NCBI GenBank assembly: GCA_965112735.1
Contig: OZ218958.1
Coordinates: forward strand, 2,294,001-2,358,000
Direction: 5' to 3'
Length of the DNA stretch: 64,000 nt
Origin: Phaeosaccion multiseriatum
Taxonomy: Eukaryota > Protista > Ochrophyta, other classes
Shown: piece by piece, positions 3,472-64,000 of the stretch
Layout: every line of letters starts with the position of its first letter
Numbering within the stretch: position 1 is the first letter of the stretch
Notes under the pieces: generated by a model
The model's input: only the letters and a program-made list of their open reading frames with translations
What the model was told of the DNA's origin: nothing
Databases searched by the model: none
Position numbers and translations under genes: made by a program

Positions 3472-6333
3472 ATGGTGCAATGGATGATGGTCGTATGTGT
3501 GCTCTGCTGCGCGGTGGTGGTAATGGCCAGCGATGGTTGGACGGATGGGCGAGCTCTGGAGGATGACTTCTTTGCCCAGGCCACGCGGAGGCAGCAGCAG
3601 ATGTACCAGGAGCAGAGAGGGTGAGTTGAATACCGATGGGGCTTGGAGGGGCGAGAGAGAGAGGTGGAGCGGCTGGGGGGGAGCGGTATGTGCAGGGAAG
3701 TGGAGGGGTTGCAAGGGTGGACACTTGGAGGCAGGAGGGAGCACGATGCAACCAGAGTCCACGGAGCGAAGCGTGCGGCGCATACACAGCTGCGGGGCTG
3801 ACAGTATGTGGGAAGGAGTTCACCAAGGTGTTCTTTGAGGGGTCGTACTCTAGTGGCGCTGAAATACGATGGCGCAATCGCAGCTGCATACCGAGGAAGC
3901 GGGCCGGTCCAAAACATTCTGTCATGGACAGGGCGAGGTGGATGGTTCAGCAAACTTGCCTCGCTGCCACCAACACCACTTTCTCCCCTTTTCCCTGTCC
4001 CTGACGCCTCCCCCCCTCTCTCTCATCTCTCTCTCTCTCTCTTCTCCTCGCTCTTCCTCGCACACACACACACACACACAGGGGCGGGCGGCCATGGGGC
4101 ACGTACGCATGTGGTCTCGTGGCAGGCTGGGTGGTGGACTGGTGGTGGGGAGGCTCCTCCGTCAAGAGGCTCAACAAGCGCTTCAAGAAGGACGTTGCCG
4201 ACCTCAACACCAAGTTCACCAACGAGAAGGACCGCATCCTGCACCTCAAGGGCGTGCAGTTGCAGGAGTACGAGCAAAGGCTGCAGGTATGTGTGTGCGT
4301 GTGTGCGTGCGTGCGTGCGTGCGTGTGTGTGTGTTGGGGGGGGGGGGGGGCGTGTGTGCGTGTGCGTGTGCGGGCGGAGGGCATGGAGAACGAGGAAGAG
4401 AGATAGATTGATAGAGAGAGGGAGATAAGGGGGAAGGGACAGAGATGAAGAGAGCGAAAGGAGAGCGCGAAAGTCGCGAAGGTCGAGCGAGAGGGGATGC
4501 GGGGGGGGGGGGGGAGGGCTCGTTGGTGATACAGCGAGCGGGGAGGGCGCTTTCCTCCACTCCTCCACGGTACAGGAGTTGGTCATACAGCAGGGAAGAC
4601 TTCCGGTGTCGATGGTTGGACCTTACTCGACTGATGTCCCGCCCTCCAACCCCCCTCCCCCTCGGTCATTCTGTCTCCTCGGTCATTCCGTTTCCTCGAT
4701 CATTCCGTCTCCCACACCCCCACAGGATGCGGACCTGACCATTCAGCAGCTGCAGCAGGCGGCGGTGGACGCGGGAGTCGACCTCGGCGTCACTCAGACC
4801 CAGGTATAGATCAGGTATAGAAACTTACGTATGAGAAAGTATGGTGAAGTATGAGGCACGGACCAGGCATGGATCCAGGTGTAGATGTAGGTATAGAGAC
4901 TTAAGTATGAGTAAGTATGAGGCAGGGACCAGGTATGGATCCAGGTGTAGATGTAGGTGTACTGCGATTTGGCGGTTGAATGGCACTTTTGACGCCCCGT
5001 GAATTTTATTAGACGCCCCTTGTCTCCGACTTTGCCCAGTTTGACTGCGTGTGAACCCCTTTATTGACCGCCTTTGACCCCATTTGATCCACTGTTTGAC
5101 TCCCTGTTTGACCCGCGTTGACGCACTTTGATCACCTTTGATCTGACTTATCCCTTTCCATCCACTGCCATCCCCTGCCATCCCCTGCCATCCACTGCCA
5201 TCCCCTGCCATCCACTGCCATCCCCTGCCATCCCCTGCTATCCACTGCCATCCCCTGCTATCCACTGCCATCCACTGCCATCCACTGCCCTCGCCTCAGC
5301 TTGATTATGACGAGTTCAAGCAGCCCGACCTCAACAACGACGACATGATCAGCCGGGCGGAGTTCACGGCCTACATTCAGAACTACCTCAAAGTAAGAGG
5401 AAGGATAGAGAGAGAGAGACGGACAGAGAGAGGGCGTTAGAGAGGGGGAGAGAAGGAACGAGAGAGACGGAGAAAATGACTACCTCAAGAAGACGAGGGG
5501 GGAGAGAAAGAGAGAGAGAGAGTGATGGATAGCGTACTGCTGCTTCTGCTGCTTCTACTGCTTCTACTGCTAGTGCTGCTGTGTCCCTTCGTTTACTTGG
5601 GGGTTGGGCGATTCACTGTATCTCTCTCACACGCACAAAACAACACACAACACACCCAAACACACACACACACACACAAACACACAACACACACACACAC
5701 ACACACACACACACACACACACACACACACACACACACACACACAAGGCGTACCCGCACATCAGTAAGGCCGACATTCCGCGTTTCGAGGACTTCGACAT
5801 TAACAAGGACGGCATCGTGACATTCAGCGAGTGGCAGAAGTACCTAGACGCACAGAGGGGCGACGTTGACCCTCAGACCGACCACCAGAACGAGCTCGTT
5901 GCTAAGATGAGAGAGCAGGTGAGGGGGGGGGATGGCAGTGGATGGAGGGGGCGGGGGTGAGGGTGTGGGGGGAGGGTGAGGGGATGAGGCGGAGGGATGG
6001 GGAGGTGGGGTGGGACAGAGAGGGAGAGAACAGGGAGGGAGAGAGGGAGGGAAGGAAGGAGGAACGGGTGTGTAGTGATATGTATCGGCCTACCATGCTA
6101 CTTTGCTTGTCTGTCCTGAGTCGGCGTGAGCATGCATGCAGCATGTATGTATGGCTTGGCGTGAAAGGGTGCCGTAACAGCCGTACCACTCATCACTCCC
6201 TGCGGCCCGCTCCTTCCCCCCCGCTCCCCCCGCTCTCCCTCCCTCCCTCCCTCCCTCCCTCCCTTCCTCTCTATAGTCGGCGAATGCCCAAAATTTCAAT
6301 CAGGTGCACGAGCAGCTGCGCAACAGATACTGA
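3472..6333 (+). CDS. Signal/anchor + TM + coiled-coil + two EF-hand Ca2+-binding protein
   Basis: Exons 3472(alternatives 3415/3451)-3620, 4082-4286, 4726-4803, 5300-5392, 5748-5918, 6277-6333, frame-consistent. EF loops DLNNDDMISRAE and DINKDGIVTFSE; hydrophobic segments MMVVCVLCCAVVVM and YACGLVAGWVVDWWW. The start codon is uncertain. Confidence 0.8.
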
Positions 6334-61026: not shown

Positions 61027-64000
61027 ATGGTGCTTACACCCAATGAGGGTGGCCGGAGCGAAAGGAACCATAGCACTACGTCTTCAACATCCACCTCTTC
61101 CTTGTCTCCAGTGTCCGGCCTTTCAGGGCAGCAGGAGCGGCTGGGAGGAGGAGGAAGGGGAGGAGGAGGAAGGGGAGGCGGAGGAAGGGGAGGCGGAGGG
61201 CAGAGGAGTGACCCAGAAGGAACCGCGAGCAATGACAGGGAGGAGGAAGAGGGACAGCAGGAGAGCTCAGCTGCGGCAGGCCCTCCCTCTTCGGGCGGCA
61301 ATGTGGAGGGGCAGGCTCATGCGCCACGGAAGTGGATAGTGGAGGAGGATGAGGTGAGCAGTGAGTGAGTGTGTTTTGTTTCTACGCGTGGGAAGGAGGG
61401 GGCAGGAGGGAGCAGGAGGGAGCAGGAGGGAGAACCCATTTCGTTGATGGGGAAGGGGGCTTTCCTTGGCAAGGGGGAGAGAGAGGGGTGGGGGGGGGCT
61501 TTTGTTGGCAGGGAAGAGAGGGAGGAGAGGGGAGCGAGTCTTCCCTAGTGAGAGGGGAGAGAGGGGGGGGGGGGGGGCTTTTGTTGGCAGGGAAGAGAGG
61601 GAAGAGAGGGAAGAGAGGGGGGCGAGTCTTCCCTAATAATAGGGGAGAGAGAGAGGGGGGGGGGGGCTTTTGTTGGCAGGGAAGAGAGGGGGGAGGGGGG
61701 AGCGAGTCTTCCCTAGTGAGAGGGGAGAGGGGGGAGGAGGGACTTCGTGCGGCAGTTCAGAGAGTCTCGCGAATGGAGGGGAGGGGAGGGGAGAGGCAAC
61801 GCGGAAGGAGTAGAGTAAGGCAGTGAATGAGAGGCTGCCTCTGATGTCAGTGGGCGACTGGGCCCTGATTGATGTATAATCCGTAGAGAGGAAAGTCCGT
61901 GTCGTCCCGACCTTGAGCAGTGAGGGAGGGGAGGGGAAGGGATGGGATGGTGTAAGTGCATTCACTGCTGTCGCCAGCTGTGACAGTGACAAGACCCCAT
62001 CCATCTCACTCTGAATTGAACACACATGGTATATACATATATGCCCTTGCTCCCTCCTTTAGTCGTCCTCCTCGCAGCAGTACCACACAAGTGTATGTGC
62101 CACTCACTCTTTGCTTTCGTGCCTCCCACGCCCCCCCTCCCTGCTGCCCTGTCTTTCTATCTGTCTCTCTGCCGCCATCCATGCCCCCCCCTCTGGCCTT
62201 CCCTTCGCCGCGTCTGCCCCCCCCCCCTTCTCCATGACCACCATCACCGCCACCGCCAGATGCTACGAAAGGCAGTAGCCAGGGTGGGAGAGGCCAACTG
62301 GAAAGAGATTGCTTCTCTTGTCGGGACCCGAAATCACGTACAGTGTCTCCAAAGGTGGAAGAAAGTGTTGAAGCCAGGTAGGAAGGGAGGGTAGGGAATG
62401 TAGGGAGGTGGGGAGGGTAGGGAGGTGGGGAGGGTGGTGCGTCCAGACGGGCGAGCAAGGAAGCAAGCAAGGAAGCACATGCTGGGGCTGCGCGTGTTGG
62501 TCTGCTACTGTTGTGCGCCCCCCATCCCGTGCACCCCTCGGCGGCTGCTCCTGACACACACACACGTACCTCCTGTCATGGCCCTCCTCCTCCTCCTCCT
62601 CCTCCTCCTCTCCCTCCTCCTCCTCCTCCTCCTCCTCCTCCTCCTCCTCCTCCTCCTCCTCTCCCTCCTCCTCCTCCTCCTCCTCCTCCTCCTCCTCCTG
62701 CCTTTCCTCCTCCTCCTTCTCCTCCTCCCCCCCCTCCTCCTCTCCTCCCCATCCTCGCTGTTGTTTGCTGCTGCTGCTGCTGCTGTACCACCAACTGCTT
62801 TATACGCAGGGCTGGTGAAGGGCCCCTGGCGGGTGGAGGAAGACGAACACCTGATGCAACTCATAGGGAGGGGCTTCAAGAATTGGGGGCAGCTTGCCGC
62901 CAGGTTAGTGCTTTATGATCCATCCACCCCTTTTCTGGTCCTTTCATAAGTCCATTTATCCATCCCTTTCCTGGTCAATTCATCCCCTCGCTGATCCATC
63001 TTTCGATCATCTGTCCATGCGTCAATGCGATGATCCCTCCATCCATCCATCCATCCATCCATCCACTGCCATCGATCCATCCATCCATCCACCCATCCAT
63101 CCATCCATCCACTGCCATCGATCCATCCCTCCATCCACCCATCCATCCATCCACTGCCATCCGTCCATCCTCCTACCTGTCAGTATGCCCGGCCGGACGA
63201 GCAAGCAGTGCAGAGAGCGGTGGTGTCATCACCTGGACCCGAGCATCAACAAGGGAGAGTGGACAAAGAAGGAGGACCAGGTGGGTGGATGGGTGGATGG
63301 GTGGGTGGGTGGGTGGGTGGGATGGGTGGGTGGGTGAACTGTCTCAAGCCTGGGCAGGGATAGAGCGGCTCGACATTTATAAACAATCGATTTGATGAGT
63401 ATTGGTGCTTTCGAGATCGAGGTCACGCCCTTCACCTGCTGATTGAAACTGAAGGCAAACAAATTAACTGAAACTGAACAAATGACAAAAACTGGCACCC
63501 CCCCCCCCCCAAACCTTCTGACAAAGAACTGCTTAGTACTACAACTGGCAACAAAACCTTGTGTGTGTGTGTGTGTGTGTGGTGAATCACCAACAGGTGG
63601 TGCTGGACATGCAAGAGCAGCTCGGAAACCGATGGAGTCGCATCGCCGCAGTCCTGCCCGGCCGCACGGAGAATGCAATCAAGATCCGCTTCAAGACCAT
63701 CAAGAGGGGGGGGACCAGAGGTAGGCACAACAGCGCCGTAACTGCCTCCTCCACCGGCGGTCTGGCGCAGCAGTTGGACGCCAAACCAGCAGGGGGAGCA
63801 GGGGCGGCTGGAGGGGCAGGGGTCGGAGCAGCGGCAGGGAGCACGGCGGTAGCGGCGGCGGCGGCGGCAGCGGCAGCAGCGGCTTCGGGAGGGGTAGGGA
63901 CTATGGCTGCGGGTATTGGACGTCGTCATCGTCCAACAACTGGCGGCGATGGAATGGGCTTTGGTGGGTTGCCATTGTCGTTACAGTCCGAGAGCGGTGG
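61027..64000 (+). CDS. Three-repeat (R1R2R3) MYB transcription factor; 3' end runs off the window
   Basis: Exons ~61027-61353, 62260-62377, 62810-62903, 63184-63280, 63597->64000. Repeats [97 protein letters not shown]. Start codon inferred. Confidence 0.92.

Follow-up and report, generated by a model that had tools for sequence, protein, structure and literature searches.

Genes and a recurrent word at their intron ends

The DNA considered here is a stretch of 64,000 nt from the ochrophyte Phaeosaccion multiseriatum (contig OZ218958.1, "the window" throughout), in which genes on both strands are interrupted by introns whose ends hold simple repeats and copies of a 16-nt word, GGATGGCAGTGGATGG. 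We refer to this word as the G-form and to its reverse complement as the C-form. Introns and gene strands were predicted from reading-frame continuity, from Pfam matches on exons and from alignment with orthologues; the exon models combine a codon-usage exon chain, which is noisy, with direct reading of junctions and correction by homology. When self-training of the exon-chain finder diverged and called repeats coding, the first-round model was kept and corrected by hand and by homology. Splicing of the modelled introns at these sites is thus a prediction from the sequence.

The large plus-strand gene at 11449-25640, with about 25 introns, matches the Pfam family FLJ43738_N and is CFAP92-like. 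On the minus strand, exon 8288-8413 of a syntaxin-like gene matches the SNARE profile at positions 6-47 from its first residue (E = 1.4e-13). Exons 5300-5392 and 5748-5918 of another plus-strand gene have EF-hand matches in Pfam, and a Myb repeat (Pfam) is spread over exons 63185-63280 and 63597-63737, which match successive parts of it, the profile being entered at position 30 at residue 1 of the former exon. A weak WD40 match (E = 5.5e-4) on exon 47843-47944 gives some backing to the minus strand at 47.8 kb. The plus-strand gene at 40.6-45.5 kb, whose single exons are without Pfam support, is one that we take to be mannitol-dehydrogenase-like, an assumption that was not used as evidence. GT donors dominate throughout the window.

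The word occurs in 31 exact copies (12 G-form and 19 C-form on the plus strand), whereas 100 dinucleotide-preserving shuffles of the window gave none, which bears out the proposal of the original prediction that an exact 16-mer goes beyond what composition alone can yield. Allowing up to two mismatches, we observed 104 matches (45 G-form, 59 C-form), which group into 29 clusters; the positions listed in the original prediction were all correct within a few bases, and the clusters at 6339, 14537, 15273-15463, 17378, 35877, 46166 and 50152 are additional to them. At about 12 loci the word stands as a single copy, and the other copies lie inside tandem arrays, for which Tandem Repeats Finder gave periods of 10, 14, 17, 21, 23, 27, 28 and 64 nt. 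Every such array, whatever its period, keeps GGATGGCAGTGGATGG or a one-base variant of it, as minisatellites sharing a core would. Short G runs flank the word on both sides and nothing else around it is conserved. Its 12-mer is the most dispersed non-trivial one in the window (18 loci), the next complex 12-mer being GTTGGTGATACA (13 loci). Read from the sequence, the C-form contains neither AG nor GT and the G-form contains both. A metagenome scan for the exact 16-mer returned isolated chance matches in unrelated, mostly gut and soil contigs, with no arrays, and is uninformative.

The strand of the surrounding gene can be read for 24 of the 29 clusters, and in 22 of these, on both strands, the G-form follows a donor or the C-form precedes an acceptor in the sense of the transcript (binomial p = 3.6e-5), so that the strand-symmetric polarity originally proposed stands. 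Typically the first G-form copy lies 9-30 nt past the donor and the last C-form copy 5-30 nt before the acceptor, both in plus-strand genes and in the minus-strand syntaxin-like and WD40-like genes; among automatically predicted introns, 60 of 63 word matches fall in the expected half. The two exceptions are both positional. A G-form at 14537 lies 77 nt before an acceptor, and the array at 41870-42364 extends into the 3' half of its intron; in each case the G-form is still upstream of the C-form of its own intron. One degenerate match (6339) lies just past a stop codon, one match with two mismatches (20132) lies inside an exon, and four clusters (35877, 46166, 50152 and 50282) lie outside any assigned gene context.

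Some 19 of the roughly 70-130 introns of the window bear the word, and both forms are present in only four of them: 8415-8799, 13821-14629, 20838-21266 and 41669-42464. All four have GT...AG ends at exactly the coordinates given in the original prediction and carry the forms in the order that it described, G and then C. About 1.3 such introns would be expected (p ~0.02, assuming 100 introns in all). Besides falling together within these four introns, the two forms flank one or two exons. The individual features are as follows, the strand being that of the G-form for word copies and that of the gene for introns.

5158..5293, minus: C-form array of 13 matches with a 10-nt period, ending 6 nt before the acceptor of EF-hand exon 5300-5392 (plus-strand gene)
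5930..5945, plus: single exact G-form, 11 nt past the donor at 5919 (plus-strand gene)
8148..8277, minus: array, G-form in the minus-strand transcript, starting 10 nt past the donor of SNARE exon 8288-8414
8415..8799, minus: both-ends intron of the syntaxin-like gene, with a predicted outer stem joining its ends; transcript G-form at 8771-8786, 13 nt past the donor, and transcript C-form copies at 8468-8517, 53-87 nt before the acceptor
12799..13382, plus: intron absent from relatives; G-form copies at 12808-12851, from 9 nt past the donor, and (CCT)137 up to the acceptor
13821..14629, plus: both-ends intron, missing in four relatives; variant of the G-form at 13846, core of (GTGA)n, inner G-form at 14537 (a positional exception) and C-form at 14609, 5 nt before the acceptor
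15273..15463, minus: C-form array of 7 matches in the CFAP92-like gene, 30-60 nt upstream of an acceptor at 15495 or 15522
15891..16406, plus: intron absent from relatives; TTGGTGATAC, a second word described below, 9 nt past the donor, and C-form at 16361-16376, 30 nt before the acceptor
17675..17690, minus: lone exact C-form within the 3' half of intron 17474-17862, with CT repeats from there to the acceptor
19851..19876, plus: two overlapping G-form copies, about 30 nt past the candidate GC donor at 19821; the relatives, too, have an intron hereabouts
20203..20344, plus: mini-intron of 142 nt, absent from relatives; exact G-form 19 nt past the donor and (CCTC)13 to the acceptor
20838..21266, plus: both-ends intron absent from relatives (a 0-nt gap in sample L125), predicted to form one long hairpin; G-form array at 20851-20986 and C-form array at 21103-21247
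40316..40583, minus: C-form array of 13 matches with a 21-nt period, ending 14 nt before the acceptor at 40597 (plus-strand gene)
41070..41567, plus: intron with a G-form variant at 41095-41110, 25 nt past the donor, and CT-rich 50-nt repeats to the acceptor
41669..42464, plus: both-ends intron; G-form array with a 27-nt period at 41870-42364, from 200 nt past the donor into the 3' half, and C-form at 42420-42445, 19 nt before the acceptor
48124..48209, plus: array reading as a variant of the C-form in the WD40-like gene (minus strand), within the 3' half of intron 47945-48558, with CA repeats from there to the acceptor
49559..49643, plus: C-form matches, also in the minus-strand WD40-like gene, 24-93 nt upstream of the acceptor in predicted intron 49535-49950; the gene model is weak
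63059..63162, minus: C-form copies in CCAT-rich repeats that stop 22 nt short of the acceptor of Myb exon 63185-63280 (plus-strand gene)
35877..35912, minus: variant C-form array, CCATCCAGTG x4, outside assigned gene context
46166..46181, minus: exact copy between GT/GA-rich and C-rich tracts, outside assigned gene strand
50152..50297, no strand assigned: C-form at 50152 and G-form at 50282 on either side of about 115 nt, as would be seen around an exon, outside assigned splice sites

Polarity and predicted pairing of intron ends

The polarity is not a property of this word in particular. Among 54 predicted introns with a length of at least 120 nt, the mean GC skew is +0.39 in the 100 nt next to the donor and -0.34 in the 100 nt next to the acceptor (Wilcoxon p = 2.5e-8), with a similar pattern on both strands. 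The 5' parts of most introns are made of GTGA, GT, GGA and GGGA repeats, of the G-form and of TTGGTGATAC, and (GTGA)n doubles as a tandem array of consensus donor sites; the 3' parts are made of AG-free C-rich repeats (CCT, CCTC, CA, CT), of the C-form and of GTATCACCAAC, the complement of TTGGTGATAC. Blocks of 40 nt with an absolute skew of at least 0.6 cover 35.6% of the window, and they give a test that is free of annotation: good coding segments are present in 26 of the 52 gaps that lead from a C-block to a G-block, as against 5 of the 52 that lead from a G-block to a C-block (p = 1e-5). Since the rule is invariant under reverse complementation, exons are bordered by C-rich DNA at one end and by G-rich DNA at the other, whichever strand is read. 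The last 60 nt are without AG in 15 of 19 curated introns, so that G-rich sequence after the donor is matched by a pyrimidine-rich, AG-free tract before the acceptor, as is expected of intron-end signals that are read by proteins.

The second word, TTGGTGATAC, has 30 matches in the window with at most one mismatch and follows the same rule, lying after donors while its complement GTATCACCAAC abuts acceptors, in the form GTATCACCAACAG. Example sites are 15900, 19288, 8916, 22005, 45374 and 7809-7845, and TTGGTGATAC is also found in frame within CAG-rich coding exons. The intron that splits the Myb repeat is supported by Pfam and offers another case:

63281..63596, plus: intron with (GTGGGTGGAT)n after the donor
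63281..63596, acceptor side, plus: GAATCACCAA, a one-mismatch copy of the TTGGTGATAC complement, abutting the acceptor CAG

Thus GGATGGCAGTGGATGG is a real high-copy word and the commonest complex unit of the intron architecture, but it is one member of a general G-to-C polarity and not a code of its own, as had been suggested; TTGGTGATAC behaves alike.

Several other repeats of the window touch on this polarity. Perfect (CCT)137 (12970-13380) and (CCT)75 (19459-19685) reach acceptors in the CFAP92-like gene, and a CCT repeat in the same transcript orientation ends a minus-strand gene intron at 48736-49449. A near-perfect (TCC)568 of 1.7 kb occupies 23713-25415 inside intron 23657-25530. At 1850-2291 there is a (GTGA)98 tract, where the predicted minus-strand intron reads (TCAC)n throughout, either as an exception to the polarity or through a model on the wrong strand. 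The segment 19821-20031 is a candidate GC-AG intron (GCAAGG...CAG). In 10 of 36 curated introns the exon after the acceptor begins with GTG, so that many acceptor junctions read CAG/GTG and have the look of a donor junction.

Complementary composition at the two ends of an intron implies that they might pair, and for each intron we calculated the energy of a duplex between its first and its last 100 nt. Ends of the same intron reach -62.9 kcal/mol, compared with -55.2 kcal/mol for swapped partners (permutation p = 0.002), and in a filtered set of 26 introns the values are -69.0 and -61.4 (p = 0.008). Duplexes formed across an exon average -50.5 kcal/mol as against -62.9 within an intron, with p = 0.27 in a paired test. 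We also computed minimum free energy (MFE) structures for 23 introns. Of 112 base pairs, 48 connect the opening third of the intron with its closing third, compared with 14 after shuffling of the whole sequence and 40 after shuffling of each half separately, and the path between the intron ends is 13 steps long in native introns, compared with 18 (whole shuffles) and 23 (half-wise shuffles). Polarity of a generic kind thus suffices for predicted folds to join the ends of an intron.

Stems joining the splice sites had been anticipated for the four both-ends introns, and folding predicts them in three, 41669-42464 being the one that fails. Intron 20838-21266 is predicted to form one hairpin in which nt 2 pairs with nt 428 (MFE -252.7 kcal/mol, compared with -190.5 for shuffles, z = -9.8); in 13821-14629 the terminal words pair, nt 24 with nt 806 (-177 compared with -126.3, z = -12.1); and 8415-8799 gives -124.2 compared with -111.1 (z = -2.8). 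The two arms of 20838-21266 are built from different variants, GGCAATGG and CCACTGCC, which indicates that the arrays expanded separately on each side and are not one copied inverted duplication. One intron carries TTGGTGATA together with its complement.

Introns absent from relatives

Orthologues of the CFAP92-like gene were sought by a profile-free search with its first exon, which gave genomic loci from five samples (L121-L125). Absence of an intron was read from translated alignments together with the nucleotide junctions, where the reading frame of the relative continues at the exact site. At least 10 introns of this gene, two of them both-ends introns, have no counterpart at the exact site in the orthologues of up to four relatives (L121, L123, L124 and L125), and this we report here as new. 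The following plus-strand introns are absent in two to four relatives:

12799-13382
13821-14629
15891-16406
16458-16849
17957-18475
20203-20344
20838-21266
one within 21683-22023
23208-23545

Introns 18584-19214 and 23657-25530 are absent from L123, sites for which the alignments of the other relatives do not decide, and in place of the latter L123 has about 75 nt of coding sequence. Conversely, two introns common to all relatives are missing in the window gene, at positions 12030 and 20787, and about seven regions have an intron both in the window and in the relatives.

The loci of the relatives contain no copy of GGATGGCAGTGGATGG or TTGGTGATAC, and strong-skew blocks cover 0.6-5% of them as against 35.6% of the window. 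However, the intron regions shared with relatives are polar in the window too and some carry the words (19279-19689, 19821-20031), which shows that the architecture is not confined to new introns. Retained and absent introns are interleaved, a pattern that speaks against one cDNA-mediated loss and in favour of gain in the lineage of the window. Intron change would represent gain rather than loss in this lineage, and since so many introns are absent from relatives, the architecture probably accompanies such lineage-specific gain.

In the same gene, the segment 13503-13715 has 213 nt in frame where relatives have 36-39 nt, and may be an intron with a length that is a multiple of three or a coding insertion.

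Readings of the architecture and comparison with known systems

The reading that we favour, and to which we would give about an even chance, is that of a lineage-specific, polarised, repeat-built intron design, in which the blocks serve as signals close to the splice sites, their complementarity folds the intron, and the word is a passenger that has been filtered by orientation. The blocks would then act in splicing. The 5' block could supply donor-like arrays and G-run signals, and the 3' block a long pyrimidine tract free of AG. As neither block pairs with itself, the only strong pairing available is that between the two ends of the intron, so that folding back would join donor and acceptor and might help to define long, repeat-filled introns. 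At the level of DNA, the word itself may spread both singly and in arrays that grow locally, each on its own, with only those copies persisting that have their G-rich strand on the donor side.

GC-rich vertebrate introns have G-run enhancers past their donors, and polypyrimidine tracts with AG-exclusion zones before their acceptors. Unlike those signals, the blocks observed here extend over at least 100 nt with a skew of 0.4-1.0, consist of tandem repeats and have exact reverse-complement words at the two ends. Another parallel, already drawn in the original prediction, is with the (AC)m-(GT)n introns of teleosts and lamprey, where AC repeats follow the donor and GT repeats precede the acceptor (Lin et al. 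2016, Genome Res, PMC4691745). That class makes up 0.09-2.3% of introns in fish, where bridging of the ends has been shown, and because the repeats turn over fast its individual instances are not conserved (PMC4691745). The principle carries over, since complementary simple repeats adjoin both splice sites, within about 200 nt, although here bridging is only predicted; the polarity, on the other hand, is opposite, with G/GT-rich sequence after the donor and C/AC-rich sequence before the acceptor (compare PMC4691745). Also unlike the teleost case, skew polarity is seen in most predicted introns, and many repeat types take part along with two complex dispersed words. If folding back does aid splicing, this would be a second, independent instance of structure-assisted intron definition after that of teleosts, with opposite polarity and far more pervasive.

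Several of our observations weigh against this reading. The gain in duplex energy of own over swapped ends is modest, and exon-by-exon duplexes reach -53.7 kcal/mol; because such pairs score nearly as well, the measure, taken between 100-nt ends, is a weak one. Perfect complementarity extends over at most 8.5 nt for own ends and 8.1 nt for swapped ends on average in 26 introns (p = 0.23), so complementarity is mostly generic and exact pairing specific to one intron is not general; both forms are present in only four of about 19 word-bearing introns. Intron 41669-42464 is less stable than its shuffles (z = +3.7). The polarity rule is broken by the (TCAC)n-filled model at 1850-2291 and by intron 18584-19214, which is without skew. 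Selection on composition would leave the recurrence of one exact 16-mer unexplained. All the relatives belong to a single clade and are nearer to one another than to the window; with no outgroup to polarise it, intron change does not have a strictly fixed direction. The ab initio intron set is noisy, several of its models having been wrong and corrected by homology, and four RNA runs searched over 7570-12960 yielded only 31-nt simple-repeat contigs, with no splice joints.

For introns that are absent from relatives one may also consider that they are the remains of introners, i.e. insertions with terminal inverted repeats consisting of the G-form and C-form or of TTGGTGATAC and its complement, in which later growth and decay of microsatellites has masked the element. 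Such an element is the same in either orientation and would thereby yield strand symmetry with no selection. What defines introners is a similarity, shared by introns of unrelated genes, that comes within about 10 nt of either splice site; terminal inverted repeats are often present too, as are, in some families, target-site duplications of 3-9 bp (Gozashti et al. 2022, PMC9860276). As in the introners of Micromonas, Aureococcus and other protists, the lineage-specific introns here occupy new positions in genes that are unrelated, and a few have sequence in common close to both splice sites. At least 10 introns of one gene, 13821-14629 and 20838-21266 among them, are missing where the codons of relatives run uninterrupted; the words stand 5-30 nt from splice sites; and four introns have inverted copies in the order G then C, more than the ~1.3 expected (p ~0.02, for an assumed 100 introns). 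Published screens, moreover, drop low-complexity families and so would miss elements of this kind (PMC9860276).

Yet an all-against-all blastn of 53 predicted introns found only simple repeats, and the flanks of the word are not conserved; an exact 16-mer lacking a conserved flank is hard to square with recent copying of a longer element. Direct repeats at the borders measure 2-4 nt and amount to the splice consensus, and at least 3 nt are shared with the downstream exon in 6 of 36 introns, where swapped pairs predict 6.1. Most word-bearing introns have one form only, lengths vary widely, from 142 nt to more than 1,800 nt, with unrelated interiors, and copies of the words are found, too, where relatives likewise have an intron (19279-19689, 19821-20031), those of TTGGTGATAC even in coding exons. 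Thus, unlike introners, these introns show neither end-to-end family similarity nor target-site duplication, and their content is of the low-complexity type that the published pipeline filters out (PMC9860276). Their membership in an introner family is not supported, and of the introner origin offered in the original prediction what remains is the indirect argument from the many lineage-specific introns; we consider it unlikely. If the words do mark insertion ends, they would belong to an introner type that published screens discard.

The introners of Amoebophrya have inverted repeats of 8-20 nt, direct repeats of 3-5 nt and non-canonical borders (Farhat et al. 2021, PMC7789003). The present introns resemble them in that some have inverted repeats predicted to join the two ends of the intron as a hairpin, and in their probable spread within a lineage, and differ from them in having canonical GT(GC)-AG sites, no direct repeats overlapping the borders, and a complementarity that is mostly generic, G-rich against C-rich. 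Chrysoparadoxa australica (Denoeud et al., bioRxiv 10.1101/2024.02.19.579948) is similar in its C-rich 3' ends, and many introns here are likewise absent from relatives; the available part of that account makes no mention of G-rich 5' halves, end complementarity or dispersed words, and describes short introns, unlike the mostly 300-800 nt observed here. In Emiliania huxleyi about 60% of donors are GC (PMC4028052), in contrast to the GT-dominated donors of the window. Pelagomonas differs from the window in being intron-poor.

A more novel possibility is a new class of intron-generating insertion, consisting of short, self-complementary, low-complexity seeds that would end in a G-rich word on the donor side and in the reverse complement of that word on the acceptor side (GGATGGCAGTGGATGG and TTGGTGATAC, perhaps among others). 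Seeds of this kind could insert at many sites and be spliced by means of their own RNA fold, the two arms then expanding independently. We offer this tentatively and hold it to be improbable; if true, it would mean structure-based intron definition outside vertebrates.

It is rather doubtful that the 16-mer is functional as such, being read by the complement in its own intron or by a trans-acting RNA or protein that marks intron ends. Such a sequence-specific code would account for a word that is exactly conserved in unrelated contexts between non-conserved flanks, that is kept by every tandem array of any period, that lies near splice sites and that gives strong predicted end-joining stems in 20838-21266 and 13821-14629. 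The word is, however, present in only about 19 of roughly 70-130 introns and in both forms in only four, and many introns use other repeats with the same polarity. In 20838-21266 the arms mismatch at each unit (GGCAATGG against CCACTGCC), so exact pairing has not been maintained, and an Rfam scan of the window found no family and no small-RNA gene.

Jeffreys-type minisatellite families comprise arrays of differing unit length that share a G-rich core and show strong strand asymmetry. In the window, too, arrays of various unit lengths are seeded by one G-rich core, with G runs flanking it on both sides and with strand asymmetry, which could point to a DNA-level feature that has nothing to do with splicing, such as a minisatellite or recombination-hotspot core or a repair patch, oriented through microhomology with the flanking G runs. 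Unlike those minisatellites, the arrays keep to intron ends and have a set orientation with respect to transcription. Local strand composition, tried as the sole predictor of orientation, was rejected: skew within 100 nt predicts only 21 of 29 clusters, compared with 22 of 24 for splice-site position. The origin of the G-to-C polarity in each intron would also be left unexplained, and an unoriented duplex mark would not give polarity in transcript sense, so that the DNA-binding mark put forward in the original prediction has no support. We judge this explanation to be very improbable.

That wrong gene models or assembly errors within repeats have created the polarity is most implausible: the models are ab initio, with several found wrong, and the RNA runs gave simple-repeat 31-mers in place of splice joints, but the annotation-free block test agrees, Pfam and orthologue alignments fix the strands and junctions of the main genes, and independent DNA runs contain 82-90% of the sampled words of the stretch.

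The favoured reading of a polarised, repeat-built design touches on two open questions, namely how new introns originate and how long repeat-filled introns are recognised. This lineage may combine many lineage-specific introns with intron ends that are complementary by composition alone, and its genome offers many natural test substrates, for example the very young-looking 142-nt intron 20203-20344 and the predicted 429-nt fold-back 20838-21266.

Elsewhere in the window, an open reading frame of 510 aa with ankyrin repeats has no exact gene product on record, and a tRNA scan of the window found none. At 29113-30464 there are 6.4 tandem copies of a 213-bp unit, each apparently made up of an exon and a 75-nt intron (minus-strand models). 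Other complex tandem repeats lie beside genes and are unrelated to the word, with units of 121 bp (39784-40094) and of 32/61 bp (36088-36296).

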